A DNA stretch of 64,000 nucleotides from Chrysemys picta bellii (Eukaryota), in assembly GCF_011386835.1 (NCBI RefSeq), contig NC_088798.1:12400001-12464000 (forward strand), read 5' to 3'. This document shows positions 7,860-47,451 of this stretch, piece by piece; the stretch's first letter is position 1; each line of letters starts with the position of its first letter. The position numbers and the translations under genes are program-made. The notes under the pieces were generated by a model. That model saw nothing but the letters and a program-made list of their open reading frames with translations, was not told where the DNA came from and made no database searches.

Positions 7860-8012
7860 TTAAATTGCTGAATGAGCCAGATTAACTTTTGTGGGTAGAG
7901 GTCCTGCTTCTTCATGTTCTTCAGTCTTGCATCGAACAACAACAAGAGCAGAAGCTGGGTATCTGGTCAGTTTTTCATTCATGTACTCCAAGTCTCCATA
8001 GATGCTCAGCTT
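7860..8012 (-). CDS. TMEM59: TMEM59 exon 8 ([50 protein letters not shown])
   Basis: Acceptor tttcag, TAA stop, matches the TMEM59 C-terminus. Confidence 0.96.
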   Translation of the reverse strand, partial: KLSIYGDLEYMNEKLTRYPASALVVVRCKTEEHEEAGPLPTKVNLAHSAI

Positions 8013-11000
8013 CTGAAATAATTAAACATTTTAAAAAGATCATATCATTACAGATTCTGAATGCAAGACTCAAGACATGCTTAGCCATAAGAACACAGAA
8101 TGGCCACAATGGGTCAGGCCAACAGTTCATCTAACCCAGTAGCCTGTTTTCCCCGGCAGTGGCCAATGCCAGGTGCTTCAGAGGGAATGAACAGAATAGG
8201 TCATCATCAAGTGATCCATCCCATCACCCATTCCCAGCTTCTGACATAACTATGATCATACATTTCTCAGTGAGGTTTTGAAGGTCCTCAAAGTAGCAAT
8301 GCTTCAACCCTTACTATGAAACACTTTGCATTTTCCATGACATCTAAAATTCATGTTCACAGTTGAGTCTGAGTCCAAGGCTAGGACTGACATGTTCCTG
8401 TCAGAATAAGTGTGGTACTTGCCAGTCTTGCATATTTTTAGAGGAAGGAGAGTGGGGGGGATGTCAGTTCAGCCAGTCCCTTCTCTCCTCCTCCAGTCAG
8501 ATTCCTGCCACTCACCCACATCATGTCCACAGGTTCCTGCCATTCTCAGCCTTTTCACAATCTTATTAAAACCCCTTTAATGGTTTAGTGAATGCACCCT
8601 GAAACCATACATCCCCTAGGTCTCACTCTGCTCTGGCAAAAAGATACTAGAAACAAATTTCCAGTTGTCAAACATGGTTACCATGGGGAAAAGGGTTCCC
8701 AGACAATGGGAGTTGCGGCGCCAGCGCTCGGGGTGAGGGCATCGCGCAGAGCCCCCAGGGCTGCCCTGTGCCTAGGAGGCAGATATGCCAGCCGCTTCCT
8801 GGAGCCGAGCCGGGCCAGGCAAGGAGCCTGCCTTAGCCCCGCTGACTGGATTTTTAGTGGCCTGGTCAGCACCAGGGTCCCTTTTCAACTGGATGTTCCA
8901 GTCAAAAGCCAGACACTGGGCAACTCAACAGCCCACAGGTAGATCTAATTGAGTATCACTGTCCTAAGCACTGGAATATGGGAGGGTTTTCTAAATCACA
9001 TCTCTATCTCTCTTGCTGAAGTTGTTCCACTGTGTGTAAACACCGTAATTAAACAATTATTGGAATAAGGACACAAACTTGGGTTTCCCACCTCCAAGGT
9101 GAGAGCCTTGATCATGACACTGTAGTCATTTCACTGTCTTTATCATTTATACAAAGTGGAACAGCTTCAACAAAATGCTTGAATAGTCATTGAGAATGAG
9201 AATAGTCATAGTGAGAATGACTGCAGCCTCGGTTATGGGCACTCACCTTGGAGATGGGAGACCCGCATTTATGTCCTTGGTCCAATGACTTTAATTTACT
9301 TTACACACAATTGAACAACTTTGAGAGATTGAGACCTGCCCCAAATGCCAACAGAGCATTCTTCTGCCACGTGGGAGACCAAAGTTCAAATCCCTGCTCC
9401 ACAGCCGGCAGAGAGGGGAACACAGGTGACCCACATCCCAGCTAAGTGCCCTATCTACTGGGCTAAAGGTTATAAAGGGAGGCACCCCCACCACCTTCTC
9501 CACCCATTTTGTGAATCTAGACCTTACAATTCTTGTCTTTACTTTTAAAACGTCCCAACAGAAAGTGCTTCATTTTGATGCAGATGAAATTTTGTTAAAC
9601 CCCAGGTCAAAATGCACTGACTTTTGATTTACCAACATTTTTAGTTTGATTCTAGCAGATTTTATTTTTTAATTTTGCAGAACAGCCAGTGAACCAAAAA
9701 ACCAGCTCTACACCTAAGACCCTATAGCATTTCAGACACTAAGTAATATGAATAACTTCAAGGTGATGTAAGCTATAGAATAATTCGCTTTACCTCAGAT
9801 GGAACATACTGCTGCACAGCTGTAGCAACAGTAGCACAACAAATCCAGAGGAGCACCAGTACGGAGAGAACAAGTGTAGTAGTTAAAATCCAACCAGAAT
9901 TTCTGAAATGTAATGAGCATCGTTAAAGTTGTTTATCCTGTTTTCTTAAACTGTTATTCCTAAAGACATACACTGGGCTTTACCAATCTGCGTTCCCATG
10001 TCTAGATCATTCAGTTGAATGCTTCACTGGAGGAGTCTGGGAAACCAGTCTCCCACCCCACCTTAGTTACCTGTCTTCAGGTACAGGGTAGGGAAGCACA
10101 ATGAATCAAGTCTAGCAGTTTCTTTACTAGGTCCCAAGCGGACTCCTACTTTAAGCTATTTTGCCAACAAATCTCTCCATTAATTGCATTTTGAATGCAT
10201 GACAGCAAAATCTCTGATCTCTCTTTCTGCCTTAAGAACCTCATTATGCCAGGGAAATAGCAGCCAAATGTTTAGTGCAATTCTAACGACCATACTCGTC
10301 AGACCAATGGTCCACCTAGCCCAGTATCCTGTCTTCTGACAATGGCCAGTGCCAGATGCTTCAGAGGGAATGAACAGAACAGTACGACTGAGTGATCCAT
10401 CCACTATCATCCAGTCCCAGCTTCTGGCAGTTGGAGGTTTAGGGGTACCAGGAGCATGGGGTTGTGTTCCTGACCATGTTGGCTAATAGCACTGATGGAC
10501 CCCTCCTCAAACTTACCTACTTCTTTTTTGAACCTAGTTAACTTTTGGCCTTCACAACATCCCAGGGCACTGAGTTCCACAGGTTGACTGTGCAGTGTGT
10601 GAAGTAGTATTTTCTTTTGTTTGTTTTAAACCAGCTGCCTATTAATTTAATCGGGTGACCCTTAGTTCTTGTGTTATGTGAAGGGGTAAACAACCACCAC
10701 AACCATTTCCCTATTCCCTATCTCAATATCATTCATGATTTTACAGACCTCTATCACATCTCCCTTTAGTCATCTCTTTTCTAAGTTGATCAGTCCCAGT
10801 CTTCTTACTCTCCCCTCATATGGAAGCTGTTCCATACTCCTAATCATTTTGTTGCCAGTTGATGTTGATAAACGCAAAGTAATGCACGCTGGAAAACCTG
10901 ATCCCAACTATTCATATAAAATGATGGGGTCTAAATTATCTGTTACCATTCAAGAAAGAACTTGGAGTCATTGTGAATAGTTCTCTGCAAACATCCACTC

Positions 11001-14000
11001 AATGTGCAGCAGCAGTCAAAAAAGCGAACAGAATGTTGGGAATCATTAAGGGATAGATAAGAAAACGACAGAAATTTATATTTATATTGCCTCTATATAA
11101 ATCCACAGTACGCCTACATCTTGAATACTGTGTGCAGATGTGGTCACCCCATCTCAAAAAAAGATATAAATGGACTTGGAAAAGGTTCAGAAAAGACAAC
11201 AAAAATGATTAGGGGTATGGAACGGCTGCCTTATGAGGAGAGATTAATAAGACTGGGACTTTTCAGCTTGGAAAAGGGACAACTAAAGGGAGATATGATA
11301 GAGGTCTATAAAATCATGACTCGTGTAGAGAAAGTAAGTAAGGAAGAGTTATTTACTCCTTCTCATAACACAAGAACTGTGAAATGAAATGAATAGGCAG
11401 CAGGTTTAAAACAAACAAAGGAAGTATTTTTTTACAACACACAGTCAATCTGTGGAACTCCTTGCCTGAGGATGTTGTGAAGGCCAAGACTATAAACAGG
11501 ATTCAAAAAAGAACTAGATAAATTCATGGAGGATAGGTCCATCAATGTCTATTAGCCAGTTGGGGCAGGAATGGTGTCCCTAGCCTCTATTTGCCAGAAG
11601 CTGGGAATGGGTGACAGCGGATGGATCACTCGATGGATTACCTGTTTTGTTCATTCCTTCTGGGGCACCTGGCATTGGCTACTGTCGAAAACAGGATACT
11701 GGGCTCGATGGACTTTTGGTCTGACCCAGTATGGCCATTCTTATGTACCTTTTCTGATTCTAAAATATTTTTTGATATGAGGTGACTAGAACTGCATGCA
11801 GTATTCAATATGTAGGTGTACCATGGATTTTCTGTTTTTGTATCTATTCCTCTCTAGTTATTAACATTGTTAGCTTTTCTGACTGCTCCTGCACATTTTG
11901 AGAGGATGTTTTCAGTATACTACTCACAATGATGCCAAGATCTTTCTTGCAACTAATTTAGACCCCATTATTTTGTATGTCTAGAAGTGTGTGAATGCAT
12001 CCTGCTGCTCAGTAGCAAAGATTAATGAAAGAAAAAGAGCAAAGTGATATTGTATCCTATCAACCTAGAAATAAAGCAAAACTGCTTATTTATACAGCAC
12101 CTTTCACACTAGACAATCCCAAAGTACTACACAAATCAATCACTTCACCCTGATATGCAGCCATATCTAGGAAACCAGTGAACTGTAGCAGCTGTTTAAC
12201 AGTTTGCAGCAAAATATCAGTAGTGTGGGACAGGAAATGACAAATATCATGGTTAGGTTAAACTGCATGGAGAGATTAGGTTGGCCAAATTGTCAACAAG
12301 TATATTGTGGCTAATATCTATTTTTGTAAGGGAGCAGTGAGCTCTTTAACACAAGTGCTCAGAACCTCCCCTTTAACACAAGTGCTCAGAACCTCCCCTT
12401 TAACATCTCCTCCAAAACATCATCTTTCTTGAATACAGTTCTGTCACTTTGAGATTGTCTGATGGAGTATATGACATGTAAAGTATATGGGGAAGGAATG
12501 TCATCCTACCATTTAAGCTTTTACAAGACAGTAGAAGATACATACATAGAAAGACATTTGAAAAAGCTATTTCTTTCCTCCTCTTCAAAAAATCCTGTGT
12601 GTGTCTGTGAACCTCCTGGCTGTAGGTCTGCTGAAAGATCACAATGACAGCTCCATTACAAGGTTACAATTAAAAACTCTAGTCTCATACAGTCCCTGTC
12701 TATACGAAGACATTGATAGTAGAAAGCTTCTTTAAAATGGTTAATTCCAGTGGGGCACCACTACCATCCAGTAGTATACCACGCTATATTTAAAATACAT
12801 TTTAAAAAGAATTTCTTACTGTGGCCTTTGTTGCCATGTACACAGGGTGAAGGTGACAGTCTGCCCATAATGACTTTTTCCTCTGTGGAAGATTTGACTT
12901 ACTCTTGCAGGTTATGAATATTTTCATTTGCACTCTAGAGAACCCAAACCAACTTACCGGATGTTTTGCTCAACAACGATTCTTTCAGATCTGTGGTGTC
13001 CTGTGGAATATATTGAACTTCTGGCTTTGACTAAAACAATAATGAAAATTGTAAGGTCTTATTTGTATTTCATAAAGCTTCAATTAACCTTAAAATTATA
13101 GTCATCCCATAAGCATCATTCACATTTGCAAAAGAAATGGGGAAAAATTTTGACACACTATCCTTTTAAGTTAATTTTGCTTTCTACATTGCAAATCCAG
13201 TGACCACTACAAAGAGAGACTGACTGCTGCCAAACATTAAGCATGCAGTTACTTGCCGAGACGGCTCTGCTATCTGTTGTGTGAGTGGAAGACACAGGAG
13301 ATCAACTGTTAACACCCAGGACACACAAAGCCTTGTAAAAGTAAAAAAGCAAGCAAGCACCTGGAATATAACTATTTTGCCATCATCTGCTTGAAGGTAG
13401 AAGGTCCATGAGGAAGTTATGAAGCTCTGTGCTGAGTCCATCATGTCACTCCAGAATGATCTCACCAGTGTCAGAGGGAAAAGGAGATGAATCCTTGGCA
13501 TCAGGGACATTAACTGTAAACACATCATTAACTGGTTTTCGATTTATTCTGTACATATTCAAGCAATTTAACACTGTCCCCAATAAGGTCTTAGTCTTTA
13601 AATAGAGAATTTCTCTCCATCTTTCTACACACATTAAATTTGGAAAAAAAAAAAAAAGTGAGACAATCTGAGCAGAAAACAAGTAGGTGGCATTTGACAA
13701 ACATGCTACATGCTTACTTGCTCTTGTCTCAGTTCAGCAAATGGCTGCTGATTCTGGCACCCAAGATGGCAAGCATATTGTTCATCAGACTGGGAATATG
13801 CTTCAGTACAGGCTGCAAAGAAGAAAAGTTGTGTAAATTGAAAAATAATTTCACATCTTAAGTCAGCAACTGAAAGCACGAGTGTAAGGTGTAGGTACAG
13901 TCTGATAAGGACTCAAGTGACCATTTTAAAGACTCCCTATCCCACCTGAGGAATAATACGAGAGCAATGTACCAATACTGGTACTGGATTCTTTGGGCTG

Positions 14001-17000
14001 ATGTAATCTAGATGATCTATCTAGAACAGGCATAAAACTGGGTTATATCTAAAAGCTGAATGCAGCAATAGCATTTGATCACAAAAATGAGGAAAAGCAA
14101 AAAACCAATCAAAATAAAGTAAGAGCAATTACTGGTATAGAAAATTCCAACATAGTGACGTAAATTAACACAGCCTCAACCCAGTAGAATAGGCAAGGAT
14201 TTTGTACCAGAGATGGCATGGATTATCAACCAGAGTTCTGAAAGACCCTCCCACAGGACTGTGGTCTTTCCTCCCACATACCATGGAAGAGTTCAAGTTT
14301 TGCTCCAGGGGATGGAAGTAAACTAACAGAGGAATCCATCAAACTGCAGAGCGCCATGGCATAACAGGGAACAAAGGAGGGTTTGCCCATCAGTGTTGCA
14401 GGAGTATAGTTAGACTTTCTATACCAATTTCAAGCTCTATCAAAAATACAAAGTCAGCTCTGCTCTTATTTCCAAAGAGCCGTATCCAATATTTAAAATA
14501 AAGGACAGACTAGCAATTACAGGAGAGAAGCCAGAAGATTTGTATTCTATTTGTGGCTTAGCCACCCACCTGCAGTATGACCTTGGGAAAAGTCTCTACA
14601 CCTGGGGAACCGGAGACAGAAGTCAAGTGGAGATAATCCTCTCTCACTAGGGTATTGGGAGGCTTAGGCCAGAAAGGCACAGAAAGAACAGGCTTGGCAA
14701 GTAAAAGTGCATCCTGAAAGTTAGGACTATCCATTTTCTCACAGGAGAGGAAAATGAACAAGCGTACAACCAGATATGGGCAGTCTATGGAAACAGGGCA
14801 GACAAAATCCTGGCAGGGAATGCACAGTAATCAGCCAAATAACTGAGTGTGCCGTTCTCAAGAGCCTGAGCAGCAGTCCTACGGTAAAACAGTTACAAAG
14901 CCAGACAACTGGCAGTCATAGAAGCACCTAGAGACAGAATTGAACATAATGGTCAGGAAGTGCATCACAAAGCACAGGACAGCCACCAAGCAACGAGCAA
15001 AATCAGTGTTATAAGGCCACGGCAAATGACCAGGCAGAAGGCAACAGTCCAGGGTGGCAATGTTGTACAGGAAAGGAGGCAACACTTCAGACTCAGCTCT
15101 ACATCTGGACTTTTGCTGCACCCCCCCTTTTTTATGATATCCCTTGACGTGTGGTTTGGCAATTGAAAAGAAATGCCTGGATCACAGCTGTGCACGGGAT
15201 ACTGCTTTTCTGCAGCTCCAGCCTATTCCCAGCTCATAGAACTCAGCTCTGTATTGCATTCACGTGCCTTTCCCCAACTCTCTCTGCTCTTGGAGCTGGC
15301 CACTGCCCCCTTCGCCTTCAGCACAAGATTGAGCCTCTTTTTAGTGCTGAGTTGGCACTTAACCACTTTTAGACTACATAGGGAGAGCTGCTCCCTCTCC
15401 TGCCTCGCTCGGTGGGCACCACGCTTTTGATCTCAGTATACGAACCTTAATGTTTATCAATTGCTTTAAGATCCTTGGCTGGAAGTACTACAGAACTGCA
15501 AAGAAATATTAGCTTGGTATATAGTTGGTAACAAGTATTTTCAGTTTTAATTATCGATATTCCTCGTCTGATCTTCAGATAATTAATCCTTTTAAACAAT
15601 TAGTTATTTATGAATGTTTGATTATTTAATGGCTTAATTCAACAAGACAAACCCAGCTCCCAAGTTGTTTAACTACATGCAAGGCAGAGAATGTAGTTAA
15701 GATTTGTTTCTCTTTCCATAGTAAAGAGATTGTAAAATTGAGTTGAATGAGGCCAGATCAGTGATGTAGTACAGTATACAGTTCACCAAGATTTGTGCTT
15801 TGTAAAGCAAACATTTCAGCTGAAGTAAATACAAAGTCATACAGTCCCAACAAATAGTCAGGGCTAGGAAAATCATCACAACTGGTGTCGTTTATTAGGT
15901 TGTCATTGCACAATGTTGCATGGAGTAAAAGGGACACCATTAGCTTAAAAATTACATTGTTAGCTAACCATTTTACACCTAATATGGTTACACTACCTAA
16001 ATTTTTCCCTTGGCCAAAAGGACCCTTATGTTTTAAAGGCTCACAAAGCAGAAACCCCTTTTAAAAATTTGAGAAATTTTAATGAGTGCTCTATCAAACT
16101 TTTTTTAAAGAGTAACATCAATTTAAAAAAAGTCAAATTGACAATATCCCTTCATATGTTTCCGCTCTTCCCTTCATTTGTCTCTTCACATTACATCTTG
16201 TGGAAAGAGCATAGAATTATCTTACCAGAGTCGCATTCCAGTTTGGTACGATTCAAGTCAATTCCATCATCCACAAACTGACAAATAGAAAACAGTCTGC
16301 AGCCTCGCTGACATGCGTACAGTTCCTCTTCCTGGGAAGTTACAAGAAAAGCAGGGTTGCTAAAGAAATTACTAATACTCCATCCAAGAATCTAGGGTAG
16401 CAACAAGCAAACATTACTACTTTTCTGAGTACTATAAAAGCTACCGTGGAAAATGTTCTAGCAAAAAAACCCAAACAAAAAGAAAACCTTAGAAGTCAGC
16501 CAAACACCAAGGTCTGTACAGTCTGGAACAAAAGCAAATTACAGTTCTTTAAAATAATTGGGCAATTTTGATATGGACTTCCTTAGTCCAAGCAGAACAC
16601 AGTTCTTTATTCAGCAAGGAGCTGGCCTTGAATAGACAGATCACTAAAGTCAGCAAGCTAAAAAATGCATTTCTGAAAAACTATAGCTTTAAAAATAAAG
16701 GTGCTAGCTGCTAAAGAATCAAAGTAGAACCTATTAACCTTCACTTCACTAATTCACACAGAAAGTTGGCAGTCCTTACCTCTCAAAGATTTAATGGCAA
16801 ATGCTACCAGTGAGGAGTCATAATAAAGATGAATAGTATATTGTCAAAACAACAATTATTTATTATAGGATAGAATTAGAAGTAAAGAGTTGTCAAAATA
16901 AGTAACCAGAGTATATTTTGTGGTGCATTATTCTTGTGTCAAGGCTACTTACTTGCCAAAATAGCTAGTCAACATACTATTTAATGGTTATGCTGAGGGA

Positions 17001-20000
17001 AAGTAAGGGAGAAGAATATTCCTTTATGTAATTACAAAACTAAGATACAGCAAGTGTATAAAAAATTTATATCAATGTTCCTATTTGATTGTCACCCTCT
17101 TTCTCACCCTTCAAATGTTACAGTCTTAGACTGTAAGCTCTTCAGGGCAGGCACTATATCGACCTCTGTGTATAATGCCCCAATCAAGATTATAGTATGG
17201 TAGCATTCAGAAGACAAAGTAAAAAACAACTTAATGCTTCTCCCAATAATTAATGAAGTTCTATAGTACTTTGTTTCACAAGAAAATACTCCCTTAGCTG
17301 TGAGAAACATACTGTTTAATTACTAGAAGTACCATGTGGCAGAGAAATGGGGTCTGTAAGGTAGACTTCATTTTGTGGGCTTGTCAACCCACAAAAGTTG
17401 TATAGCTAGAGCAGTACTGGTATAGCTAAGGCAGTACAACCCTCCTAGTGTGGTCACAGTCATACAAGCATAGTTTATTTCCTTATGGAAAGGGGAATAA
17501 GCTACACTGGTATACGGCACCTTTATATTAGTATAACTACGGCCACACTAAGTTGTATAACTAAGAGTTGTAACAGTATAACTATTTAGATAAAAAACAT
17601 GCCCCCAAGTAGAGTAGTTATACCCTACTGGTAGAAAAACTGTGTTTAAATGAGGCCTAGGCAAGTACCTACTTCCCTGGTATTTTAGAAGTTTTGCTTA
17701 TTTTTTAAAGCAAAGCAATAAAAGTAGCGAGTTATCTAGTTCCACAATGTGGAATATTTGCTATGTCAGAGACCAGATAGATAAGGTAATATCTTTTACT
17801 GCACAAATTTCTGTTGGTGGAAAGCACAAGCTTTCAAAAAGTGTCCGATTTCTTTCCACAGACCTGAAGAACTCTGTGTAGTTTGAAAGTCTGTACCTTC
17901 CTCCAACAGAAGCTGGTCAAGTAAAAGATATTAGCTCACCTACCTTGTCTCTCTCATATGTTAGGACCAACAAAACTAGTTGTTTGTAGTGTTGTTGTAA
18001 ACACTGAACATTGTTCTGCATTTGACACCATGTGAATTTATTAACAGGAAAACTCAAGACAAGTCTTTTGGCTCTGTCCTCATCCTTACGGTTGTCACCA
18101 TCTGTTTTACAGGTGGAGAGTGTGACTTGTACAGTCTATATGGATTTATAAAAACATAATAAGAAGTGAATATAATGTAACTGGAATATGCTTCATGCAA
18201 AAGGTCTCTTGTAAGGTATCATTAGAAAGCTTATAATCTACAGAGTGTGATCATCCCATTTGTATAAATGTACCACTCTTGTATCTAAAACTAGAAATAT
18301 AAAATATAACTCTGAGGGCCTACTGTAATTATGTAAAGTGTGGGCCATTAATGATGGTTTGGAATCTTGATGACTCCCATTAACAAGGACCATTGTCTGC
18401 AGATGGCTCTGTTTACCTGTTAGTCTTCCTGTATATGTGTGTGCTGGCAAGTGGGCAATGAAGTCTTGCAGTGACATGTGATCATGTCACCTGAACTGGA
18501 ATCCATCTTTAACCTGGTGGTTTTCCAGGGGGGGGGGGGGGGAGGGTGGAAACCCAGAGGGACAAAGGGTTCCCGCCTTATGCAAAAGATATATAAAGGG
18601 GTGGAAGAGAACAGAGGGAGAGAGGAGCCATCATGAAGAATCCCCTAGCTAACACCTAAGCTGGAACAAGAGCTGTACCAGGGAAAAGAATTGTGCCCAG
18701 GCCTGGAAGGTGTTCAGTCTAAGAAAAAACTTACTGAAGCATCTTTGAGGGCAAGATTATCTGTATTCAGTTTGATTAGGCATAGATTTGCGCATTTTAT
18801 TTTATTTTGCTTGGTGACTTACTTTGTTCTGTCTGTTACTACTTGGAACCACTTAAATCCTATTTTCTGTATTTAATAAAATCACTTTTTACTTATTAAT
18901 TAACTCAGAGTATGTATTAATACCTGAGGGAGCAAACAGCTGTGCATATCTCTCTATCAGTGTTATAGAGGGCGAACAATTTATGAGTTTGCCCTGCATG
19001 AGCTTTATGCAGGGTAAAACAGATTTATTTGGGTTTAGACCCCATTGGGAGTTGAGCATCTGAGTGCTATAGACAAGCACACTTCTGTGAGCTGTTTTCA
19101 GGTAAACTTGCAGCTTTGGGGCAAGTGATTCAGACCCTGGGTCTGTGTTGGAGCAGACAGGAGTGTATGGCTCAGCAAGACAGGGTTCTGGAGTCCTGAG
19201 CTGGCAGGGAAAATAGGAGCAGGGGTAATCTTGGCACATAGGGTGGCAGCTCCCAAGGGGGTTTCTGTGATCCAACCCGTCACAGAGAGAACTTTGAATT
19301 CATTATTAAAGGAACAAGGCAAACACACCACACCTTACCATATAACTAACCCATTGCAAACAAACTGATGCGATTTTCTTTCAGACACAGATGTTCTGAT
19401 ATTTTATACTGCAAAAACATAGAACTGCCAACCTGGGTCAAGATTTTTTTTATTTATTTTTTAATAAAGCCTAACAACCTTGACTGTCTCTCTAATAGAA
19501 ATATCCTGCTGCAGAAAATATGCCTCAAATGTTGACATTCATATTGAATTGGCTTTGGCAGGTATGATGCACACACAGATTCTCTTGACAAGTCTTAATG
19601 AAGTTTATCTTGAAGTTAAACCAAACAATGAATGTTTCGAAAATAAAAAGTTTCCTGCCACCTCTATTTCTATTTGGTAGCTTAGTGGTAAGTAGTGTTT
19701 AAAATCAACACAGGATAGATTGTTTAAGTCACAAAGTACTCAGTAGGAAGAGGATTGTGTGTGTCACTTTATTGGCCTCTTTATGATGTATATTATAATA
19801 ATGAGCTCAAAGTGCTTAGTTTTTTAAAACGAAGCCACCAGAAACACCAGTCGCAATTTCCTTCAAAAACTTGCCAAATTCCTGCAACAAAAAGAAGGGA
19901 ACTATGCTTCACCATAGGAGTCTGAAATTTCATCTGCGGTAGGAAAAGATTTGGGGTTGGGATTAAGGAAGAAAGTTGTTTAATCTTACAATGATTCAGT

Positions 20001-35100: not shown

Positions 35101-35165
35101 TTCCCACTCCACCCCCGCAATTAAACCCAGCCCACCAATAGTCCTGAGCCAACACTGACCTGCAG

Positions 35166-38217: not shown

Positions 38218-38296
38218 ATGGCAGGGATGCTTAACTACTACTTCCTCATCTGGGCTGTAATAATGAGGATCTCTGGCAGGCACCTGGCACCGAAAG
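38218..38296 (+). CDS. Novel cytokine receptor-like gene, signal peptide exon (MAGMLNYYFLIWAVIMRISGRHLAPK-G)
   Basis: tttccccag|ATG start, hydrophobic core, phase-1 donor AAG|gtaaaa. Confidence 0.82.
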
Positions 38297-41200
38297 GTAA
38301 AATACAAGATCTAGGCACTGTAAACTGAGACGCAAAAGAGGGGTGAATTCACTGCTATTACCCGTTGGAGATACTTCCTGCTGCTTGCAATTGAGATCAG
38401 TTTAATCATAGGGCTGTGATCATTCCATTATTATTTGTATTGCAGCCACGTCTAGGGAGCCCAATCATAGACCCGGCCCCATAGTGCTAGGTGCTGCACA
38501 AACACAGCCCTGCCCTGCCCCCGAAGAGCTTACAACACTGTGTCAGATGCTAAATCCGAGTGCGGGTAACATTCAGTGAAGTCTTGCTAGTGACAGAGGG
38601 CTTGATCCCGGCACAGGGCAGCTATGGGGTGTTGTGTCTATAAACAGAAGGTGAAAAGCGGTGAGCAGGCCACACAGTGTGGGGGAGTCCGATCCTGGAT
38701 GACTCAGCGCACTGTGCAGCTTCCACGTTATCTTGCCTCACAGCAGGAGCAAAGCCAGAGAGGGAAACGTGCAGTTCGGCAGCTCGTTAGCATGATGGGC
38801 CGCACACTGGGACCCAGGTCTCTGACCATAGCCTGCCCTTCCTTTACCCTGCCTGTGCATAAGTAAAGGGGCAAGCACACTAGGGGCTTGCAGCTTACTA
38901 CCAGGCAGTACACCTAGTACTCAATCTGACTTGCCCTGACACGGAGCTTCCACTTGCGCTGGAGCGCACCAACCTGCTGCATGATGGGCAAGGACTTGCA
39001 GGGTCAAAGCTACAGTCTTCAGCACAGAGAGACTTTTCTCTCCCTTTGTCTCCCCACTTCTGCCAGCTGGCTTGGAGGAGGATGCTGCTGCTGGGGCGGG
39101 GGGGGGGGGGGGAGCAGGGAGAGGAGGGGCGGGGCTTTGGGTACCCAGGAGGGCAGGTAGAAAGTGTTCTGGGCAGTGGGAGGGCAAGGCAGATGGGGCT
39201 GGGTATCCGCAGCTGTTTCTGTTACCTGAGGTTCAGCAATGGGCAAAGGGGGTCAGAGCTCCACAACGAGCTGTAAAATAGCAGTATGTGGTCGAAGGCC
39301 TTAATCCAGGTGTTCACAGTCACTGGGGGAAGAAAAACGTAGCATGCATGTGCTGAAAGCCACATTGCTAAATAAAATAGCTTTGTGGCTTTCATTGGCT
39401 TCCTCCTGCCCCAGATAGCAAAGGCTACTTTTCCATTGTATGGACCCAGGGCCTGCACAAAAGTAAATACATCGAATACATCAAATGTTGGTTTTAAGCA
39501 CAGCCGAGAAACAACCGGGGTGATACTTTTTTTGTACTCTTATCCATCAAGATAGGTAAACAGATATTTGCTTCCAGAGTTTGAACAAAACAAACCCCAT
39601 GTGGAGACTGTGCCTGCCAAGGTCCAGCCTGGAGCAAATTTTACAGCTAAATTATAAGCCCCTGAAAATAGAGTCTTAGAATTATCACTCCACGAGACGC
39701 CTAACTAGAGGCTGGAGGTGAAAACAGCCTGGCTGTGATGAAGGCTAGGCTGAGAAGATCTCCTGTTTAGGCTGTGTAAAAAGGCAATGTTTCCCCATGG
39801 GTATAGATGTATATTCGGGGGATATGCAAGATAAAGTGCAGTAAGATTATTGTAAAAAGCAACAGAGGGTCCTGTGGCACCTTTAAGACTAACAGAAGTA
39901 TTGGAGCATAAGCTTTCGTGGGTGAATGCCCCTGAACCCTCTGTTGCTTTTTACAGATTCAGACTAACCCGGCTACCCCTCTGATACTTAAGATTATTGT
40001 GGCTTTTTTGAATGTTAACTCCTCCCTACATAGAGCATGCTGAAGATTACCAGTAAGATGCTCCCTAGTTCCCGTGGCATAATGAAAATGGCCATCGATC
40101 TGTTTGATGATATATCACTCCGTTCTCCCTTTGCAATCTCTAGGAGCCTCGTCCTCCTTACACCTGCGGTGCATAGTGCTTTATCCAAAGTGCATGTCAT
40201 GCCACTGGACTCCACCGGATGGTGCTGCATCCAATACAACATTCCACCTCAGATATAAGATGAGGTAAATAAAACTGGGTGAAAACTTTATCCCAGCTAT
40301 GAAACACGATCCTTGAATTACTGCATGTTTATGGGAGACGCCACAGCATCCAGCAAGGGGATGTAACTCTCTTCTTTTGACATTATATCATTCACTGCAC
40401 GGAGTTCCCCCTCTTTCCCTTTATTCTAATGTATTGTGAGTGGTGTGGGCTGCAGTATTTTAGTCGCACAGTAGCTGCACTGTTTTGTCCGCTCAGATGT
40501 GGGGTGGGAATCAGAATAATTGTCAAAGTACCTTTCCACCGATATTGATACATTCTCCAGCATTGGCCTTCTTGGTGTTACTGCGGTGTCTGGATTATTC
40601 CTTTAGAATGCTGTGGTTAGAAACCAGTAGCACCAGCTCTTGTTAAGTGTGTATCTAAATCACACACACTAATGCGATGGCCTTTGATCTAACTACTCTT
40701 TCAGCCTCTCCTGCGGCACAGCGTACAGCATACCTCGACGAAAGGCGCTGGGGTGTTTGCAGCTGGACACACCAAGTGCACCTTTCCAGTCATCCACATG
40801 GACATAACCAGTGTTTGACAAAGCACATGCATATTCCATCAGCAGTGCGATGGCTTGAAAAATTAACTACCTAGAGATTTCCACATGCCTAAGGAGCAAA
40901 CCCAGAAAAATTGCAGCTTTAAAAAGGAGCTGCCTTTGGGAACATGCCCAAAGCGCAGGGGAGGGTGGAATGGGAGGGCATTGTATGTCTTCCTGCATAG
41001 AGACCTCTGGGTGGGATGGTCTCCTCACTCTTTGTTCACTTGGTTTAGGGGAGTAATAGAAGCCGAAGAATGCAAAGACTACATCACCAGTGGCCCCAAC
41101 TCCTGCTATTTCAGCCGCACCAACCTGTGCCTGTACTTGACCTATGAAATCTGGGTGGAAGCTGGGAACCAGATGTCAGAGAAGCTGATTGTTAACACTG

Positions 41201-44200
41201 AAGACATTGGTGTGTGGGGTGTGTGTGAGTGCGTGTCAGGGCGTGTTTGCGTGGTTGGTTCTTTGTTTCATTGTATTTATGGCAGAGAGGAAATTAGAGC
41301 AAATATTCACATTTGTGTCCTGACCCTGAGCCCACTGGAGTGGAAGGAGAGAGTCTTAATGACATTAATAGGCTTGGATCAAGCCCTTAGAGGAAGGTGT
41401 CATGCTCCAGTGGTCTTAGTCTAGGACTGGGAGCCAGAAAAAAATTGAGAGATTGATTCCCTCTGTGCCCATATACAAACCAAACGTCCTAGGTCTCAGT
41501 TTCCCCATCTATCAAGTAGGAATAATACAACCTCACCTTGGTGTCGCAAGGGATAATTATGACTCAAGCTTTCAAATGCCCTTTGTAGAGAAGTACCGTT
41601 ATTTAGGCAAGGGGCTGGCTAGTCCTGACCACCTAGGCCTTGTCTTCACTTGGAAAAAAGGTGCTTTTACCACGCGTTAGCTCAGCCATCATAATTAACA
41701 CGAGTTAAAATCTTGGGGCGGACCAGGCAGCTTTCAGTTTTCACATGTGTTAGCAGGTCAAACCTCAGCATGCTAACGTGAAAACTACCAACTGCCTTGT
41801 CCATGGTGGGGTTCTAATAGGTGCTAGCTAACACATGGTAAAACACCACCTTTTTTTTCCTACTGTGGACGCTCGCCCAATGTGAACGCAAAGCTCCCAC
41901 TAGAGCACCCGCTGCTTTTAACGTTCACAATGTGAACCAAAACCCAGGGAAGGTCAGATCCCAGTGTTGCTGCTCAGGCCCTCCTCTAATTATAAACAAA
42001 GGAGCTTCAGTCAACAGTGCAGCTCCAATAGTCTGGTGCTGAACAGGAGAGGGGGCATCGAGCCGGGGGCAAAGCCTCCGCGCATCCCTTATCTCGTGTG
42101 ATTCCATCCAGGGGCAGACCCCGTCCTTACTGGGCTTTTTACGCTCGCTTTATCTTGGCCTTCACCCGGTATCTGCTCTCTCCCCATCCCTCCAGACAGC
42201 CTGCTGGATTTAACACAGCCTCCCAATTCCTGCCTTGCTGCAGCTCCGCTTTACTTTTTTATTTTCCCTTCCCCACCACGGTTCCCACAGCACAGATACT
42301 TTGTGGAGGGGAGGGCTTGGGACAAAGGAGGATTATTGGCCCAGGAGTGCAATCTCTCTAACTCTGTCTGGGTGCCATAAAACCTGCCCTGTTCCATTCC
42401 GATGCAGCGTGGCGCTTGCAGCGAGAATGTGCTGTTTGCCACTGGCTCAGTTCTGCAGCCCCTGCATGTGAGTCGCTTCCCCTGAAGTCGATGGGGAGCT
42501 ACTCACATGCAGCAGCAGCTCGAGTCAGAGAACCAGGCCCCTCCTCCTTGTGTTTAAGGCAGAACACAGAGATAGCAGCAAGTAAACTAATCCCGGAGTG
42601 TCCTGGCAAGAAGGGCCAGGATGAGTCAGATTTCAATTGGATTAGACTCTAGAAAGTCAGCATGTCACCCCTGTGAGCTTAGAGCCTCTGAACATCTAGA
42701 GCAGGGAGATGGTCTGATAGAGGTCCCTTCTGAACAGTGTCAGGGGACCGGGATCTAACGCAGCACGCCCCAGCCACGTTGTAGATGGGTCTAAGCCAGG
42801 TCAATAACCACGTCTTTTAAGGACTGTAACATGAATCTCATACGGATTGTTCCCATCTACACAGGCGAGACCCAGCCGTAATGAAATACAGCCGGGGCAC
42901 TACTGTGTGCTAATCCAGTCCCCTGACACTGAGAAATGTGCTGCATCGACAGGCCCATGACTAGAGCTGTTTCTTCCCATATATTTTGTTTGGGCAGCAT
43001 GTAAACTCCCAAGCAGGGGGTGGGTGGCAGCCCCTGAATGTAATGGGCCTCTTTCAAAGGCAGTGGTGGTTAAAATGCCCCGACATTGGCTCCAGTTTCC
43101 CTCTCTCCCATCTCTTTGCTACCAGCTTCTCTTCACTATAAACTGCCTTTTTTTTTTTTGTTCAGCCTACAGCAGCGTGAGCTACCCATCCCCCCAGCTG
43201 CAGCGTGAAACAGCTCAGCCTTTTCCTCCGCTGGTGGCTGTTGCTTGATTCAATNNNNNNNNNNNNNNNNNNNNNNNNNNNNNNNNNNNNNNNNNNNNNN
43301 NNNNNNNNNNNNNNNNNNNNNNNNNNNNNNNNNNNNNNNNNNNNNNNNNNNNNNNNNNNNNNNNNNNNNNNNNNNNNNNNNNNNNNNNNNNNNNNNNNNN
43401 NNNNNNNNNNNNNNNNNNNNNNNNNNGAGTAGAGTCTCTCTCTCTCTCACACAGAGTGTGTGTACAATAGGAATAGAGTCCTCTCACACACACACACACA
43501 CACACACAAAGTGTGCATAGGAGTAGTGTCTCTCTCTCACACACACATACACACAAAGTGTGCGATAGTAGACACACACACATGAAGTGAGTGTGTGATA
43601 GGAGTCAAATCTCTCTCTCTCTCTAACACACACACACAGCAAGTGTGCAATAGGAGCGGAGTCTTTCTTTTTGCCACAAGCTGGGACTGGACAACAGGAT
43701 GGATCCCTCAAAAATTGCCCTGTTTTGTTCCTTCCCACTGAAGCATCTGGCACCAGCCACTGTCGGGAAGACAGGCTTCTGGGATAGCTGGACCATTGTT
43801 AGTCCAGTTCTTATATGGATGTATGGCCGTTCTTGTATTTCCATCCAGGGACTGACCTGGTTACTTCTGCACTGAGACCGGTTTGTCTCCCCCAAAGGAG
43901 GGTTCTTTCCCCCGACACACAAACCTCTCCCCTCTGATCCCTCAGCAAACAGCCTCTGCCCTTGCACGCTCCAAGAGGCAGCTCCAGAAACCAGCGACTG
44001 TAGCACACACAACAGACCGAGGAGCAGGAAAATCACCCCCAGATTGAGAAGCACATGCAGTAGTTTACTCAGTCATAATACTTCTCTGCCCTATTGTGCC
44101 TAGAAGAATTACATTAAAGACTTTCTTCACAGTGAGACTTACGCTTAGTAACATGGAGGGCTCTTTTCTATTGGCCAATGTGACTTCTCAGGATTTCCCC

Positions 44201-47200
44201 CGCTTCCTCGAAGACTTTGGCCTGATTATGAAAAGTGGCCTGATTCAGGAAAGCAGCACTTAAGCGTGTGCTTCAGTGCATTCCTGGATCAGGGTTTTGC
44301 TTGGGGGAAGTGAAGTTATAGGCCCTTGTGTAGTTATGTAACAAAGAGCACTGGGGCCAGATTCTGGGAAGAGCTCGCTGAAGTCAATGTGGTTTGTGGT
44401 GCTCATCACCACCACTTGGGTTTTTTCAGTGGTTGGGATTGGGAGGAGGGGAGTTCCTTTGGATCCCCATAAAACCTCAGGGCCAGTCTTGCGCTGGCAG
44501 GACTCCTAGGTTGAGCAGTGATGCTGGCAGATATTTTAGGAACATCTGTTTCACAAGTGCTGCCCACTAAGACAGGATAGCATAGGGCAATTTTACTGCT
44601 AGTGGCCATGGGCTCCTGGTGAGAAGCTGCTATATTGATTACTGCCAGCCAAAAGAAACTTTAGTTTGCTTTTAAACAGCAAGACTCACACTGCTGGCTT
44701 TAGCCAAAATTCACATGGGAACTGCACTCCCTGTCCGGACTGCTGAGATGGCAGTTCCTCTTCCATTGTAGATGGGGAAGATACTAATAAATCTGTTTTA
44801 GTGATTTCCTCCTCTTGTGACGAGGGGTACAATTTTCAGAAACAACTAAATGACTTAGGCGCCAAGGCCCAGATCCTCAAAGGTACTTAGGCACCTAATG
44901 CTCATTGATTTCAGTAGTGCCTAAATACCTTGGAGGATCTGGGGCCTAGTCCCATTTTCAAAATGAAGTAGGCACCAAAGTCTCATTGAAAACCTATGAG
45001 CCTTAGGCTTCTGAGTGTATAAGTCACTTGGAAATGGGACCTAGCCATCTAAATCGCTCAGGCGCTTTCAAAAATTTTACCCTAGAGCATGAACAAACCA
45101 CTGATCACACACATACACCTGGGCACATAGCCAACCCTCCGCCCATGTCCCATATACCCACAATGTGAGTTTAGCCCCTCCTTTCACCTTCTTTTTTTTA
45201 TAGCTAAAACTGAACCACCAGAGGGCCTGAAGGCCACTGGATTTGGCACCCACCTATCCGTAGAATGGGGGTACCCACCTGGCGTGGCAGCCTCCTATTT
45301 CCCACTGGTGTTTGAGCTTCAGTACCAAGAACAGGGGAGTGGCGAATGGGAGGTGAGTCACTTTTGCTTTCCTTGCCTTCCATGGGCTGGTCTGTAGTGT
45401 AACAGGCGTGGGGCTTTCCTTACCAAAGCCCTGGGGAACCAGGCCTAGTTTGCAAGGAACCTTGTGCCGCAGAAGTCTGCCCACTGCCTGGGAAACGTGA
45501 ACGTGGGCTAGGAACGTTCAGAAGATAGGGTGTTCAACAGCGGCAGACGAGCTGTCACAAGTAAAGCAAAACAATAAGCAATTGTGTCATCCCGGTTGTA
45601 GCTCCACGGACTTCACTGGTCTTACATCAGAGATGGCTCTGACCCTGCGGTCAGTATCCTAGGATATTGACTTGTCAGTTCAGTATTGATCATATGTAAC
45701 ACCGACAGACCCCAGTCATTGGTGGAGGGATCGAATCTGGGACCTCTGGAGCTAAATGCATGAGCCTTTACTGCATGAGCTAAAAGCCATGTATATGCCT
45801 CTTAGCTAAGGCTGTAGCAGACTCATTAATCTCTAAGCGGTCTCGGTGCCCTAGAGGGGGCAGAACACCACACTCAGGAGGTGTGTGGGTTACACATACA
45901 CTCTGGAGGAGCACTGAAAGTGACTGAAAAGAAAGGCCCCTTTTAGGAAACAATATAGCCGTTGGCCAGGAGGGTGGACTAACCAGCTGAACCTCTCTGA
46001 TGTCTATGATTCTTTTAGAAGAAAAGACAACCCCAGCTCAGGATCCAAACTTCATGGCCAGATTCTGTCCCGTTCCCACCCCTTTCTGCCCCTTTCCTAC
46101 CCCTTTCGGCCCCTCTGGCCGCATCAAGGGCCAGTAAGCTGCCTTAACAGGGCAGCTAAAGATTCTTCCAACATAGGCGAGTCCATGGCTGGCACAGATT
46201 CAGCATAACCAGGTCTGGGTCATGTCTTCCTAGCCCCCTCCCCCATCCAATGTATGGAGATGTCGGGGGTGTGGCCGGAGCATGCTGTGCTCCAGCAATC
46301 TCCACTGGCATAACGGCTCCTCTTGAGTTATTACAAGCCAGTGTAGTTTGGAGCAGCCCTGCTATAAACTGCGTGAGTCTTGGAGCCTGTAAGCAGGTGG
46401 AGCTCCACTGACTTATGCAGCGTTGGACAAGCTCACTCATGCTGTCCTGGGTTTTGTCCTAACTAGACTTCAACAGCTTTTCCTGCAAATGCATTAGCTG
46501 CAGACACAATCAATGTGACAGCTACGCTATAATAAAAATGGTTTCAGAAGAAGTGGTTTTTTACCCATGAAAGCTTATGCCCAAATAAATCTGTTAGTCT
46601 TTAAGATGCCACCAGACTCCTTGTTGTTTTAGAGTAGGTGTAGATTTCCAAATGCTTGCTCCATAAACCATATTAATGATATTTTACTTGCAGTATATCA
46701 TTTAGCCACTAGATGTCTCTGTGTGCTATACATTTCCAGATAGGTTGAGGTCCTTGGTAAACAAAAGAGACAAAGCTGGAACTCAGGCTGCATGGAAGTC
46801 TGTTTCCTTCTGTCTATAGATCACAGTTGTTTTATTTTATGAGTACCTCCTCTTTAAGACAGACTGTGATTCCATATACTATGGAATATTCTAAACAATG
46901 TTGTTTGAGAATAATTCAAAATTTATTTAAAAAGGAAACATATTTATTTAAACAGGTGAGTCCTTCCAGGGTGTGGTTTATTAGTCCAGGGTCCCAAGAC
47001 CTCCTGCTTTCTTCTCCTGGGGCTGACACTGATTTCTTCTATGGCCTTGAGACAGTCACTTTGCTGTGCCTCAGTTTCCTTGTTGTGTGCATAACTTAAT
47101 GTAAATGTAAAAATGCTTTGGAGATGCTGAGTGATAAGTATTATTATCTTTCTTCCTCTCAGTTATTTCTCCTAACTGAAGAATAAAGGGGCAAAGGAAT

Positions 47201-47451
47201 TACTCTTGTTCTTGGGAAGTGAAGTGAAAGTAATTTAAATAGGTTTTTCTCTTTCTCCGTATTAGCAAGAGCCTGATGTGGGTGAGCAGACCAGCTACTA
47301 TGTTTATGGTGTGAAGCCAGACACCGTGTACATCCTGGCGGTCCGCTGCAAGAACTCGGACGGGAAAGGCTTTTGGAGTGACTGGAGCACCCCGGTTCTA
47401 GTCAATTCTGGCCAAGCCACAGCAAAACCAGGACAATCTGAAGCACAGTGA
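38218..47451 (+). CDS. Secreted class I cytokine receptor-like protein (CRLF1/PRLR-related sequence, EBI3-like architecture), 231 aa
   Basis: join(38218-38296, 40144-40264, 41049-41209, 45204-45352, 47266-47451), 696 nt open, all GT-AG, intron phases 1-2-1-0. Signal peptide, CX9CXW, second Cys pair, EPP hinge and WSDWS are present, followed by a stop and poly(A) signals. Confidence 0.93.
39854..39988. mobile_element. Penelope family A inverted fragment with 12-bp direct flanks
   Basis: aaaaagcaacagagg...cctctgttgcttttt palindromic arms. taagattattgt occurs at 39842-39853 and 39989-40000. Confidence 0.8.
40144..40264 (+). CDS. Novel gene exon D1a (ASSSLHLRCIVLYPKCMSCHWTPPDGAASNTTFHLRYKM-R)
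   Basis: Acceptor ttgcaatctctag, donor GAG|gtaaat, CX9CXW motif, phase 1 in and phase 2 out. Confidence 0.92.
41049..41209 (+). CDS. Novel gene exon D1b (GVIEAEECKDYITSGPNSCYFSRTNLCLYLTYEIWVEAGNQMSEKLIVNTEDI-A)
   Basis: Acceptor tcacttggtttag, donor TTG|gtgtgt. ECKDYITSGPNSCYF is PRLR-like and YEIWVEA is CRLF1-like. Phase 2 in, phase 1 out. Confidence 0.95.
41636..41878. mobile_element. Decayed Harbinger-like MITE
   Basis: Termini ggccttgtcttcact ... actgtggacgctcgcc with internal symmetry. Confidence 0.5.
43255..43426. other. Assembly gap (172 N)
   Basis: Run of n. Confidence 1.
43427..43655. repeat. Compound (TC)n/(CA)n minisatellite, about 5 visible units ending in ...gtgtg..atag
   Basis: Direct reading. 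It abuts the gap and probably caused it. Confidence 0.9.
43674..43818 (+). mobile_element. CR1 3' UTR fragment
   Basis: Matches the 3' UTR of the CR1 at 11570-11746. Confidence 0.7.
44865..44947. repeat. Palindromic hairpin element (ggcccagatcctcaaagg ... ccttggaggatctggggcc), nested in related hairpin elements
   Basis: Self-complementary arms, same family as 61383-61480. Confidence 0.7.
45204..45352 (+). CDS. Novel gene exon D2a (KTEPPEGLKATGFGTHLSVEWGYPPGVAASYFPLVFELQYQEQGSGEWE)
   Basis: Strong acceptor cttctttttttatag, perfect donor GAG|gtgagt. EPP hinge and LSVEWxxPP FN3 strand. Phase 1 in, phase 0 out. Confidence 0.95.
45695..45894. mobile_element. 200-bp solo-LTR-like element with an internal antisense tRNA-like cassette
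   Basis: TGTAAC...GTTACA termini, 4-bp TSD CATA, minus-strand A/B-box-like sequence. Confidence 0.7.
46544..46630 (+). mobile_element. Penelope family A 3' fragment, decayed hammerhead core
   Basis: cagaagaagtgg...cccatgaaagcttatgcccaaataaatctgttagtctttaagatgccaccagactcc. Confidence 0.75.
46975..47140 (+). mobile_element. CORE-SINE (MIR-like) fragment
   Basis: cttgagacagtcactttgctgtgcctcagtttcc. Confidence 0.55.
47266..47451 (+). CDS. Novel gene terminal exon D2b (QEPDVGEQTSYYVYGVKPDTVYILAVRCKNSDGKGFWSDWSTPVLVNSGQATAKPGQSEAQ*)
   Basis: Acceptor ttttctctttctccgtattag, phase 0, WSXWS box, TGA at 47449-47451. Confidence 0.95.
   Translation, partial: QEPDVGEQTSYYVYGVKPDTVYILAVRCKNSDGKGFWSDWSTPVLVNSGQATAKPGQSEAQ

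Follow-up and report, generated by a model that had tools for sequence, protein, structure and literature searches.

The window analysed here is a stretch of 64,000 nucleotides from Chrysemys picta bellii that carries TMEM59 on the minus strand, followed by TCEANC2 and a cytokine receptor gene, both on the plus strand. The TMEM59 coding region (7860..21708, -) belongs to the BSMAP family and runs from a start ATG at about 21708 to a stop codon at 7860-7862. Pfam BSMAP matches four of its exons (16194-16391, 13709-13912, 13187-13543 and 9776-9922), and six-frame reading adds a signal-like N-terminal exon and a C-terminal exon. TCEANC2 (22798..30825, +) is arranged head-to-head with TMEM59 and encodes 208 amino acids in four coding exons (22798-22899, ~26250-26393, ~28486-28677 and ~30637-30825), which were located by tblastn with the turtle TCEANC2 proteins P0172/P0175 at 90-100% identity and contain Pfam matches to Med26 and TFIIS_M. 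The starts of the two genes are about 1.1 kb apart. The region between them (21200..22400) has a GC content of 66-75%, includes a 42-bp tandem repeat at 22054-22340 and is likely to be a bidirectional promoter. Farther downstream, blastn of the gharial sequence L001 against the window reveals conserved non-coding blocks (34782..35428, +; 71-77% identity) that flank the counterpart of the 5′ exon of the gharial model, and these blocks are possibly the promoter or first exon of the receptor gene itself. The first-pass annotation had proposed this gene order, and Pfam, tblastn and exon mapping bear it out, including the divergent orientation of the receptor gene (+) relative to TMEM59 (-). LDLRAD1, which it placed on the minus strand of the same locus, is not confirmed in the window: a search for exons with an LDL-receptor class A motif or rich in cysteine gave none anywhere in it, including positions 1-7860, which lie beyond the coordinates given for the annotated feature.

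The receptor gene (38218-47451, +) comprises five coding exons with an open reading frame of 696 nt encoding 231 amino acids. Exon 1 (38218..38296) supplies the ATG, directly after an AG acceptor, and the signal peptide. The first half of domain 1, with its C-x9-C-x-W motif, is encoded by exon 2 (40144..40264) and the second half, containing the second cysteine pair and YEIWVEA, by exon 3 (41049..41209). Domain 2 is divided in the same manner between exon 4 (45204..45352) and exon 5 (47266..47451), the latter ending with WSDWS, a 20-residue tail and a TGA stop codon. All four introns are GT-AG with phases typical of the family. Transcript contigs from two runs of the same organism cover exon 4 and splice it to exon 5 (45350>47264 with GT..AG ends). 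They stop about 100-150 nt past the stop codon, at 47522-47608, leaving a short 3′ UTR (47452..47608, +), and an ATTAAA sequence lies at 47624. Comparison with gharial gives a dN/dS ratio of 0.30, and comparison with eagles gives 0.18-0.30. The gene is real, intact and transcribed; the reading as a pseudogene is ruled out by the intact open reading frame, the splice evidence and the dN/dS values. Its product is 100% identical to RefSeq XP_023960685.2 (P0178) of Chrysemys picta bellii, auto-named "cytokine receptor-like factor 1".

Intron 3 (41210-45203) contains an assembly gap (N; 43255..43426), which is separated from exon 3 by 2 kb and from exon 4 by 1.8 kb and is bordered on the right side by (CT)n/(CA)n repeats. 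The reading frame is independent of the gap because the latter falls within an intron, the intron is of similar size in gharial (3.76 kb vs 3.99 kb in the turtle), and in the orthologue proteins of 10+ species exon 4 follows exon 3 without extra residues (NTEDI|AKTEPP). This direct joining also rules out an exon hidden in the gap.

In class I cytokine receptors the domain 1 signature reads C-x(9-10)-C-x-W-x(26-32)-C-x(10-15)-C (PMC1963337). Domain 1 of the receptor fits this pattern with C-x9-C-x-W-x26-C-x10-C at residues 36-86, and the WSXWS motif of domain 2 is present as WSDWS at residues 207-211. The Pfam families EpoR_lig-bind, IL6Ra-bind and fn3 match the orthologue P0152. In an AlphaFold model (mean pLDDT 74.7) the chain folds into two beta-sandwich domains, and its Foldseek matches are class I receptors only, and the protein atlas matches are likewise confined to generic class I receptor clusters. 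Sequence signature and modelled fold identify the protein as a member of the class I (haematopoietin) cytokine receptor superfamily.

The build is that of a signal peptide followed by one cytokine-binding module; both an Ig domain and a membrane anchor are lacking. A secreted product is suggested by a single hydrophobic stretch in the hydropathy profile, which is N-terminal, by a stop codon 8-22 residues past WSxWS in every lineage compared, by the ends of the transcripts, and by a search downstream of exon 5 in which no box-1-like exon was found. The receptor is predicted to be a secreted soluble subunit of the type represented by EBI3, p40 and CRLF1. The conserved stop codon and the transcript ends rule out a membrane receptor with missed downstream exons. 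A scan of 1.84 billion representative proteins with the WSxWS exon returned mostly giant multi-FN3 proteins and one useful match, the Mauremys model P0046, in which exon 5 is joined to 60725-60862. This join seems to be an artefact of gene prediction, since the Chrysemys window lacks the splice donor that it would need.

Orthologues of the receptor are found in salamanders (Ambystoma, Pleurodeles), caecilians (Geotrypetes, Rhinatrema), crocodilians (Gavialis, Crocodylus, Alligator), more than 12 turtles and eagles. The eagle contigs and the Logan bird contigs have open frames across all five exons. TCEANC2 lies directly upstream on the same strand in 4/4 loci with readable neighbours, those of gharial, the caecilian Rhinatrema and two eagles. 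In eagles a CUB/ZP-N gene (CDCP2-like) lies downstream. A recent copy restricted to turtles, the case that the first-pass annotation had set against its own reading, is ruled out by these amphibian, crocodilian and eagle orthologues and their neighbour genes. The absence from mammals that it had claimed is supported by searches of 5.8 billion proteins, which returned no mammalian orthologue while reaching amphibian orthologues at 55-59% identity. The orthologues returned are from tetrapods only, in word-indexed searches that need several shared 5-residue words and so are of little use for fishes. The matches of these searches were orthologues only, with neither CRLF1 nor PRLR among them (one query had a length window of 200-635 aa). 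A natural TCEANC2-receptor fusion model exists among the protein records and served as a query to widen the length window. A metagenome scan for the receptor gave no match.

Fixed in the interval between TCEANC2 and CDCP2, the receptor is an ancient tetrapod gene in its own right and not CRLF1 itself. A true CRLF1 has an Ig-like domain before the binding module and a length of about 400-425 aa. The Ig domain is absent from every receptor orthologue, the gene is not beside TMEM59L, and its product shares only 31% identity with CRLF1 of human and mouse. Zebrafish clf-1, by comparison, is 55-62% similar to its human counterpart (PMC1963337). RefSeq models in many turtles and crocodilians nevertheless bear the name 'cytokine receptor-like factor 1'; the NCBI names among the orthologues include CRLF1, 'prolactin receptor-like' and 'growth hormone receptor-like'. 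With the gene and true CRLF1 bearing one RefSeq name in many species, errors can enter orthology tables and corrupt studies of expression. No published description of the TCEANC2-adjacent receptor gene was found in the literature searched.

The most likely origin of the gene, with a probability of roughly 55%, is as a positional duplicate (ohnologue) of CRLF1. The early vertebrate genome duplications would have doubled an ancestral pair consisting of a receptor gene and a TMEM59-like gene, with CRLF1-TMEM59L arising from one copy and the receptor gene and TMEM59 from the other. The main support comes from position, in the form of the CRLF1-TMEM59L-SSBP4 adjacency seen in stickleback. We take human CRLF1 and TMEM59L to lie head-to-head at 19p13.11 with SSBP4 nearby, and human 1p32 presumably reads LDLRAD1-TMEM59-TCEANC2-CDCP2 with SSBP3 nearby and no known coding gene between TCEANC2 and CDCP2. 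The 1p and 19p regions form a known paralogon (JAK1/JAK3, SSBP3/SSBP4, MPL/EPOR). The stickleback adjacency of CRLF1, TMEM59L and SSBP4 is given in a gene table (PMC3276181). Several features count against this origin. TCEANC2 sits between TMEM59 and the receptor, whereas CRLF1 abuts TMEM59L directly, and CRLF1 has an Ig domain where the receptor has none. A 2R origin also predicts a fish or shark orthologue or its later loss, and none was seen in searches that are weak for fishes. No Ig-like remnant was found in intron 1 of the receptor gene, which rules out a decayed Ig exon there; that the receptor lineage lost the Ig exon, as first proposed, is pure conjecture.

Two other histories bear on the same neighbourhood. 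The receptor and CRLF1 might stem from different members of a pre-2R tandem receptor cluster near the TMEM59 ancestor, and would then have a neighbourhood in common and yet not be true duplicates of one gene. Class I receptor genes are numerous in both regions, with IL12RB1, IL27RA, EPOR and EBI3 at human 19p13 and LEPR, IL23R, IL12RB2, MPL and CSF3R on human 1p. A mosaic similarity, in which domain 1 resembles PRLR/CRLF1 and domain 2 resembles gp130/LEPR/CRLF1, would also fit an old separate lineage. Such hidden paralogy is nonetheless improbable, as a single ancestral pair is the simplest account of the adjacency to TMEM59L on one side and TMEM59 on the other, and CRLF1 is still the single best overall match. 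Alternatively, a CRLF1 or PRLR module could have been copied later, on the tetrapod stem, and landed by chance next to TCEANC2 with no genome duplication involved. The restriction of the orthologues to tetrapods agrees with such an event, and a bare module is what a partial copy could look like. It is very improbable all the same: identity to CRLF1 and PRLR is ~30%, as low as between old paralogues, and the introns occupy the usual places of the family so that the gene is not a retrocopy. A chance landing beside the paralogue of CRLF1's own neighbour is itself very unlikely.

Similarity scores place CRLF1 first over the full length of the receptor. It is the best full-length match in the PDB (106 bits with phmmer and 126.5 bits with an 11-orthologue profile) and the best Foldseek match (31% identity in Swiss-Prot, 31-33% in AFDB clusters). 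EBI3 scores 55-63 bits vs 106-126 for CRLF1. PRLR is second overall with the 11-orthologue profile (117 vs 126.5 bits) and leads on domain 1 alone (50.4 vs 46.4 bits for CRLF1). Domain 2 alone scores 52 bits with gp130 and 49.8 with CRLF1; LEPR reaches 70 bits when two stretches are summed and 41.5 with its first module alone. LEPR is also the best match of the WSxWS exon (52 bits vs 28 for CRLF1). A close relationship to LEPR is ruled out, its likeness being confined to domain 2. The scores fail to separate CRLF1 from PRLR as nearest relative. The claim that the gene is a 2R sister of CRLF1 is supported in part, with the stickleback adjacency and the top full-length match on its side and a nearly equal PRLR, better on domain 1, on the other.

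These values bear on a different, unlikely placement of the receptor in the GHR/PRLR/CRFA4 group, perhaps as the tetrapod counterpart of the fish orphan CRFA4. CRFA4 is a PRLR/GHR-like orphan with WSXWS that is known only from coelacanth, gar and teleosts and is reported missing in tetrapods (PMC6997183; PMC1963337). Loss of the membrane and cytoplasmic exons would have converted such a receptor into a soluble hormone- or cytokine-binding protein, and its place beside TMEM59 would then be uninformative on CRLF1. Besides the strength of PRLR on domain 1 and its close overall score, the receptor resembles PRLR/GHR in having no Ig domain and shares the segment ECxDYxTSGPNSCxFS with PRLR, and some orthologues have been named PRLR-like or GHR-like by NCBI. 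In contrast, neither a membrane anchor nor box 1 occurs in any lineage. Alignments of GHR/PRLR have CWW and T(S/A)xW among their conserved motifs (PMC6997183); in the receptor C-H-W replaces the former and the latter is absent. No fish cluster ranks above CRLF1 in AFDB, where the sole fish GHR-like match has 22% identity. Moreover, for GHR/PRLR (human chr 5) the 2R partner region would be expected elsewhere than on 1p.

By analogy with CRLF1, EBI3 and IL-12 p40, the receptor protein would be secreted. A four-helix cytokine may dock at the elbow where its two domains meet, a role modelled entirely on these relatives. The protein could then accompany this ligand out of the cell, the pair making up a two-chain cytokine, or retain it as a soluble binding protein. 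A bolder and rather doubtful reading combines origin and function: the receptor might be an additional, overlooked secreted 'beta-chain' of the IL-6/IL-12 world, a 2R twin of CRLF1 lost by mammals, in a two-chain cytokine of which immunology and neurobiology, as studied in mammals, have no knowledge. If true, amphibians, turtles, crocodilians and birds would have retained this chain for more than 350 million years, and its partner helical cytokine is possibly likewise absent from mammals or an orphan there. Only a few secreted receptor-like chains exist (p40, EBI3, CRLF1 and the soluble alpha receptors), and each defines whole cytokines such as IL-12, IL-23, IL-27, IL-35 and CLC/CLF. One more such chain, conserved in tetrapods other than mammals, would indicate a cytokine system hidden from mammalian work, with a bearing on immunity or neural development in reptiles, birds and amphibians and on the study of regeneration in the axolotl. 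The 1p/19p paralogon would also gain a clean example, and so would the list of losses on the mammalian stem.

Among the known systems, LEPR resembles the receptor through its CRH1, which is best for the WSxWS exon and has ...DG.G.WSDWSTP in common with it, but LEPR is a long multi-domain membrane receptor. PRLR, which also lacks an Ig domain ahead of the module, differs together with GHR in locus and in possessing a membrane anchor, box 1 and a cytoplasmic tail; where these receptors have CWW and T(S/A)xW, the receptor reads SCHWTP and LYLTYEIW. EBI3 (IL-27 beta) and IL-12/23 p40 are both secreted and serve as subunits, each in partnership with a helical cytokine. EBI3 has the same plan of a signal peptide and one binding module followed by a stop, although its sequence similarity is weak and its chromosomal place is another. 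CRLF1 (CLF-1) is the secreted partner of CLCF1. At 422 aa it has an N-terminal Ig domain and a long C-terminal tail that the receptor, at 231 aa, lacks. The receptor has a shorter F-G loop before WSxWS, has no mammalian copy among those found, and lies beside TMEM59/TCEANC2 instead of TMEM59L. Both are class I receptor-like proteins without a membrane anchor, secreted in the case of CRLF1 and predicted to be so in the case of the receptor; C-x-WTP and YEIWVEA are common to the two, and each gene lies near a member of the TMEM59 family.

Downstream of TCEANC2 the window carries an expressed and conserved gene with the architecture of a class I cytokine receptor, which belongs to a known family but is undescribed and carries the wrong name. 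Guided by orthologue proteins, five coding exons are resolved on the plus strand at 38218-38296, 40144-40264, 41049-41209, 45204-45352 and 47266-47451, giving an ORF of 696 nt (231 codons) interrupted by four introns, all of them GT-AG and in phases 1, 2, 1 and 0. The protein has a hydrophobic N-terminus, its sole hydrophobic stretch, and a single N-glycosylation site; residues 36-86 carry the class I pattern C-x9-C-x-W-x26-C-x10-C. WSDWS, which occurs only once in the window (within 47266-47448), forms residues 207-211, with the stop 20 codons further on. The product is 100% identical to the Chrysemys picta bellii model P0178 (XP_023960685.2, "cytokine receptor-like factor 1"); the gene is modelled in RefSeq already, but under CRLF1's name. 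The only N run in the window, at 43255-43426 (the remainder is vertebrate DNA), lies in intron 3, approximately 2 kb from both flanking exons and with CT/CA microsatellites on its right side. Exons 3 and 4 join without extra residues in turtle, crocodilian and amphibian orthologue proteins, gharial intron 3 is of similar length, and the run leaves the reading frame unaffected.

The stop falls 8-22 residues past WSxWS in every lineage compared, and no membrane-anchor or box 1 exon is found downstream of exon 5. Because of this conserved early stop and the lack of such an exon, the product is regarded as a soluble and presumably secreted module. The Ig domain is absent from all orthologues examined and intron 1 contains no Ig-like remnant; an Ig exon, if ever lost, would have gone before the tetrapod ancestor. 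A segment of intron 1 (38445-38567) matches the 40-residue extra exon of a Chelonia isoform X1 model, P0153. This exon is 78% conserved in the window, has no Pfam match and may be either alternatively spliced or an artefact of gene prediction. A splice from exon 5 to 60725-60862, as in the partial Mauremys mutica model P0046, has no usable donor here, transcripts end at about 47.6 kb, and the far-downstream join is probably a mis-prediction.

Transcript contigs from four small public runs, whose status as RNA is only a guess, were placed on 45100-48300. Two of the four contain the joint 45350>47264 with GT..AG ends, exactly the predicted exon 4/5 splice, and therefore contain processed transcripts; their source organism is also that of the DNA runs in which the stretch is complete. 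The contigs span exon 5 and end at 47522-47608, with an ATTAAA at 47624. Comparison with gharial gives a dN/dS ratio of 0.30, and comparison with eagles one of 0.18-0.30; the binding module is complete and under purifying selection. At the other end of the gene, one 891-nt contig runs on for 791 nt upstream from mid-exon 4, some 430 nt more than exons 1-3 can account for. Several annotation pipelines have produced TCEANC2-receptor fusion models in turtle, alligator and eagle (P0157, P0168, P0187, P0165), and the turtle model P0157 joins TCEANC2 exon 3 in frame to receptor exon 1. This suggests either that the mRNA has an extended 5′ leader or that transcription runs through from TCEANC2. The receptor ATG stands immediately 3′ of an AG acceptor (cccag/ATGGCA, 38203-38223). 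Between TCEANC2 and the receptor gene, turtle 32321-38302 and the gharial locus (L001, 4952-13045) share seven non-coding blocks of 69-81% identity; those at 34782-35097 and 35257-35428 bracket the site of the gharial model's 5′ exon, and this region may be the receptor gene's own promoter. In intron 4, a ~75-nt element at 46555-46630 (within 46491-46704) is covered by contigs to a depth of 6,000-17,000 in each of the four runs, and its flanks vary greatly; this marks a short interspersed element of high copy number and wide transcription.

The first-pass annotation had given the gene order as LDLRAD1(-), TMEM59(-), TCEANC2(+) and receptor(+). The last three hold. LDLRAD1 was not located: the entire window contains no LDL-A motif or cysteine-rich exon, and nothing recognisable as coding, LDL-A exons included, was found in 1-7860, a part that lies outside the coordinates given for the first-pass reading. 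A TMEM59-family gene is identified by six-frame reading and Pfam on the minus strand, from ~21708 to 7860. Its exon 1 opens MAAPRG... at ~21708, the Pfam BSMAP matches lie at 16194-16391, 13709-13912, 13187-13543 and 9776-9922 on the same strand, and the stop of the final exon is 7860-7862. The four coding exons of TCEANC2 (22798-30825, plus strand) match turtle TCEANC2 proteins at 90-100% identity and encode the TFIIS N-terminal and central domains. The two genes are separated by 1.1 kb of 66-75% GC. Within this spacer a C-rich 42-bp tandem repeat of ~6.5 copies (22054-22340) gives long spurious ORFs on both strands at 21850-22505. Towards the other end of the window, reverse-transcriptase fragments on both strands at 61612-63181, including a 315-aa open minus-strand stretch matching RVT_1, are CR1-type LINE remnants, which are usual in turtles.

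Orthologues were recovered by protein searches from many turtles, from the crocodilians Gavialis, Crocodylus and Alligator, from the salamanders Ambystoma and Pleurodeles, from the caecilians Geotrypetes and Rhinatrema and, as partial models only, from eagles. The orthologues of hard-shelled turtles are 92-100% identical to the window protein, those of Pelodiscus and Carettochelys 82-84%, crocodilian ones 70% and amphibian ones 53-59%. In gharial, Rhinatrema, Morphnus and Aquila alike, the same-strand gene directly upstream is TCEANC2, a 208-209-aa Med26/TFIIS_M protein, and both eagles have a CUB/ZP-N gene (CDCP2-like) downstream on the opposite strand. From this shared neighbourhood it follows that the receptor gene sat in the TCEANC2-CDCP2 interval already in the tetrapod ancestor, and a recent duplication confined to turtles, which would have spoken against the first-pass reading, is contradicted. 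The public eagle models ('growth hormone receptor-like' and 'TCEANC2 isoform X3') consist only of exons 3-4 and intron read-through. All five exons, including the signal-peptide exon, are open over 3.3 kb in the two eagle loci (L002 8422-11679, L003 8499-11745) and in a further contig presumed avian from its near-identity to them (L004 8435-11691); the eagle gene therefore seems to be intact and its models wrongly predicted, so that in birds the gene is mis-annotated rather than lost. No mammalian, squamate, frog or fish orthologue protein was returned by a search that requires several shared 5-residue words. For this reason absence from squamates, frogs and fish proves little; absence from the densely annotated mammals agrees with loss. 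Two stretches, 60222-60513 and 57713-57934, match eagle DNA (L002/L003) equally in all frames and are therefore conserved elements without coding function. Both are situated between the receptor gene and the CDCP2-like gene, in eagles ~1.1 kb past the 3′ end of the latter, and may be an enhancer or CDCP2 3′ UTR; no CDCP2 CUB exon is found before the window end.

The gene is not CRLF1 itself: it lacks the Ig domain, encodes 231 rather than ~422 aa, shares only 31% identity with human CRLF1 and does not have CRLF1's neighbours. Even so, CRLF1 ranks first over the full length in all four comparisons, by a small margin that shifts by domain. A phmmer search of PDB gives CRLF1 106 bits, PRLR 89, LEPR 82, gp130 72, GHR 64 and EBI3 55, and an 11-orthologue profile run against PDB gives 126.5, 117, 88, 81, 77 and 63 bits, respectively. 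Foldseek returns CRLF1 at 31% identity against PRLR at 25-30% and GHR at 21-26% in Swiss-Prot, and CRLF1 at 31-33% against a PRLR-containing entry at 28% in AFDB clusters. Domain 1 scores 50.4 with PRLR and 46.4 with CRLF1; domain 2 scores 52 with gp130, 49.8 with CRLF1, ~42 with PRLR and 41.5 with the first LEPR module; the last exon alone scores 52 with LEPR and 28 with CRLF1. That the gene stems from a different member of a tandem cluster predating 2R is quite unlikely. The motifs point both ways, with C-x-WTP, YEIWVEA, DV..QTS and KP.TVY common to the receptor and CRLF1, and ECxDYxTSGPNSCxFS common to the receptor and PRLR. The fish orphan receptor CRFA4 is PRLR/GHR-like, with WSXWS and a short cytoplasmic tail; it has been described in coelacanth, gar and teleosts and reported absent from tetrapods (PMC1963337; PMC6997183). 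The receptor could be its truncated tetrapod counterpart, a live rival, but it has neither CWW nor T(S/A)xW, the motifs given for the GHR/PRLR/CRFA4 group, and no fish cluster in AFDB ranks above CRLF1; membership of that group is on the whole unlikely.

What lifts CRLF1 above PRLR as a relative is the neighbourhood. Human CRLF1 and TMEM59L are head-to-head at 19p13.11. The 1p32-p31 and 19p13 regions are paralogous, sharing JAK1/JAK3-TYK2, SSBP3/SSBP4, MPL/EPOR and IL12RB2/IL12RB1. The receptor gene is transcribed away from TMEM59, with TCEANC2 between them. In a published gene table for stickleback, CRLF1 is preceded by C19orf60 and followed, in order, by TMEM59L, a novel gene and SSBP4 (PMC3276181), and chicken CRLF1 and TMEM59L lie in one GGA28 region (PMC7379350). 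Only very rarely would chance place the relative of CRLF1's neighbour near the receptor gene, and a later chance insertion is highly improbable. Because the neighbourhood match is so unlikely to be fortuitous, the best single reading is that the receptor gene is an ohnologue of CRLF1, with a probability of roughly 0.55. The first-pass annotation had proposed this origin together with loss in mammals. Its observation is largely confirmed and its interpretation partly supported: the old fixed locus, the top full-length match and the lack of a mammalian protein favour it, whereas PRLR, a robust grouping with which would speak against it, comes close.

Judging from its build, the product is most likely a secreted cytokine-binding chain, which would hold a four-helix cytokine at the elbow between its two domains. 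The pair could form a two-chain cytokine in which the receptor aids its partner's secretion; alternatively, the receptor could serve as a circulating binding protein. EBI3 has the same build, whereas CRLF1, the closest full-length match at ~422 aa, and p40 have this build with an Ig domain added.
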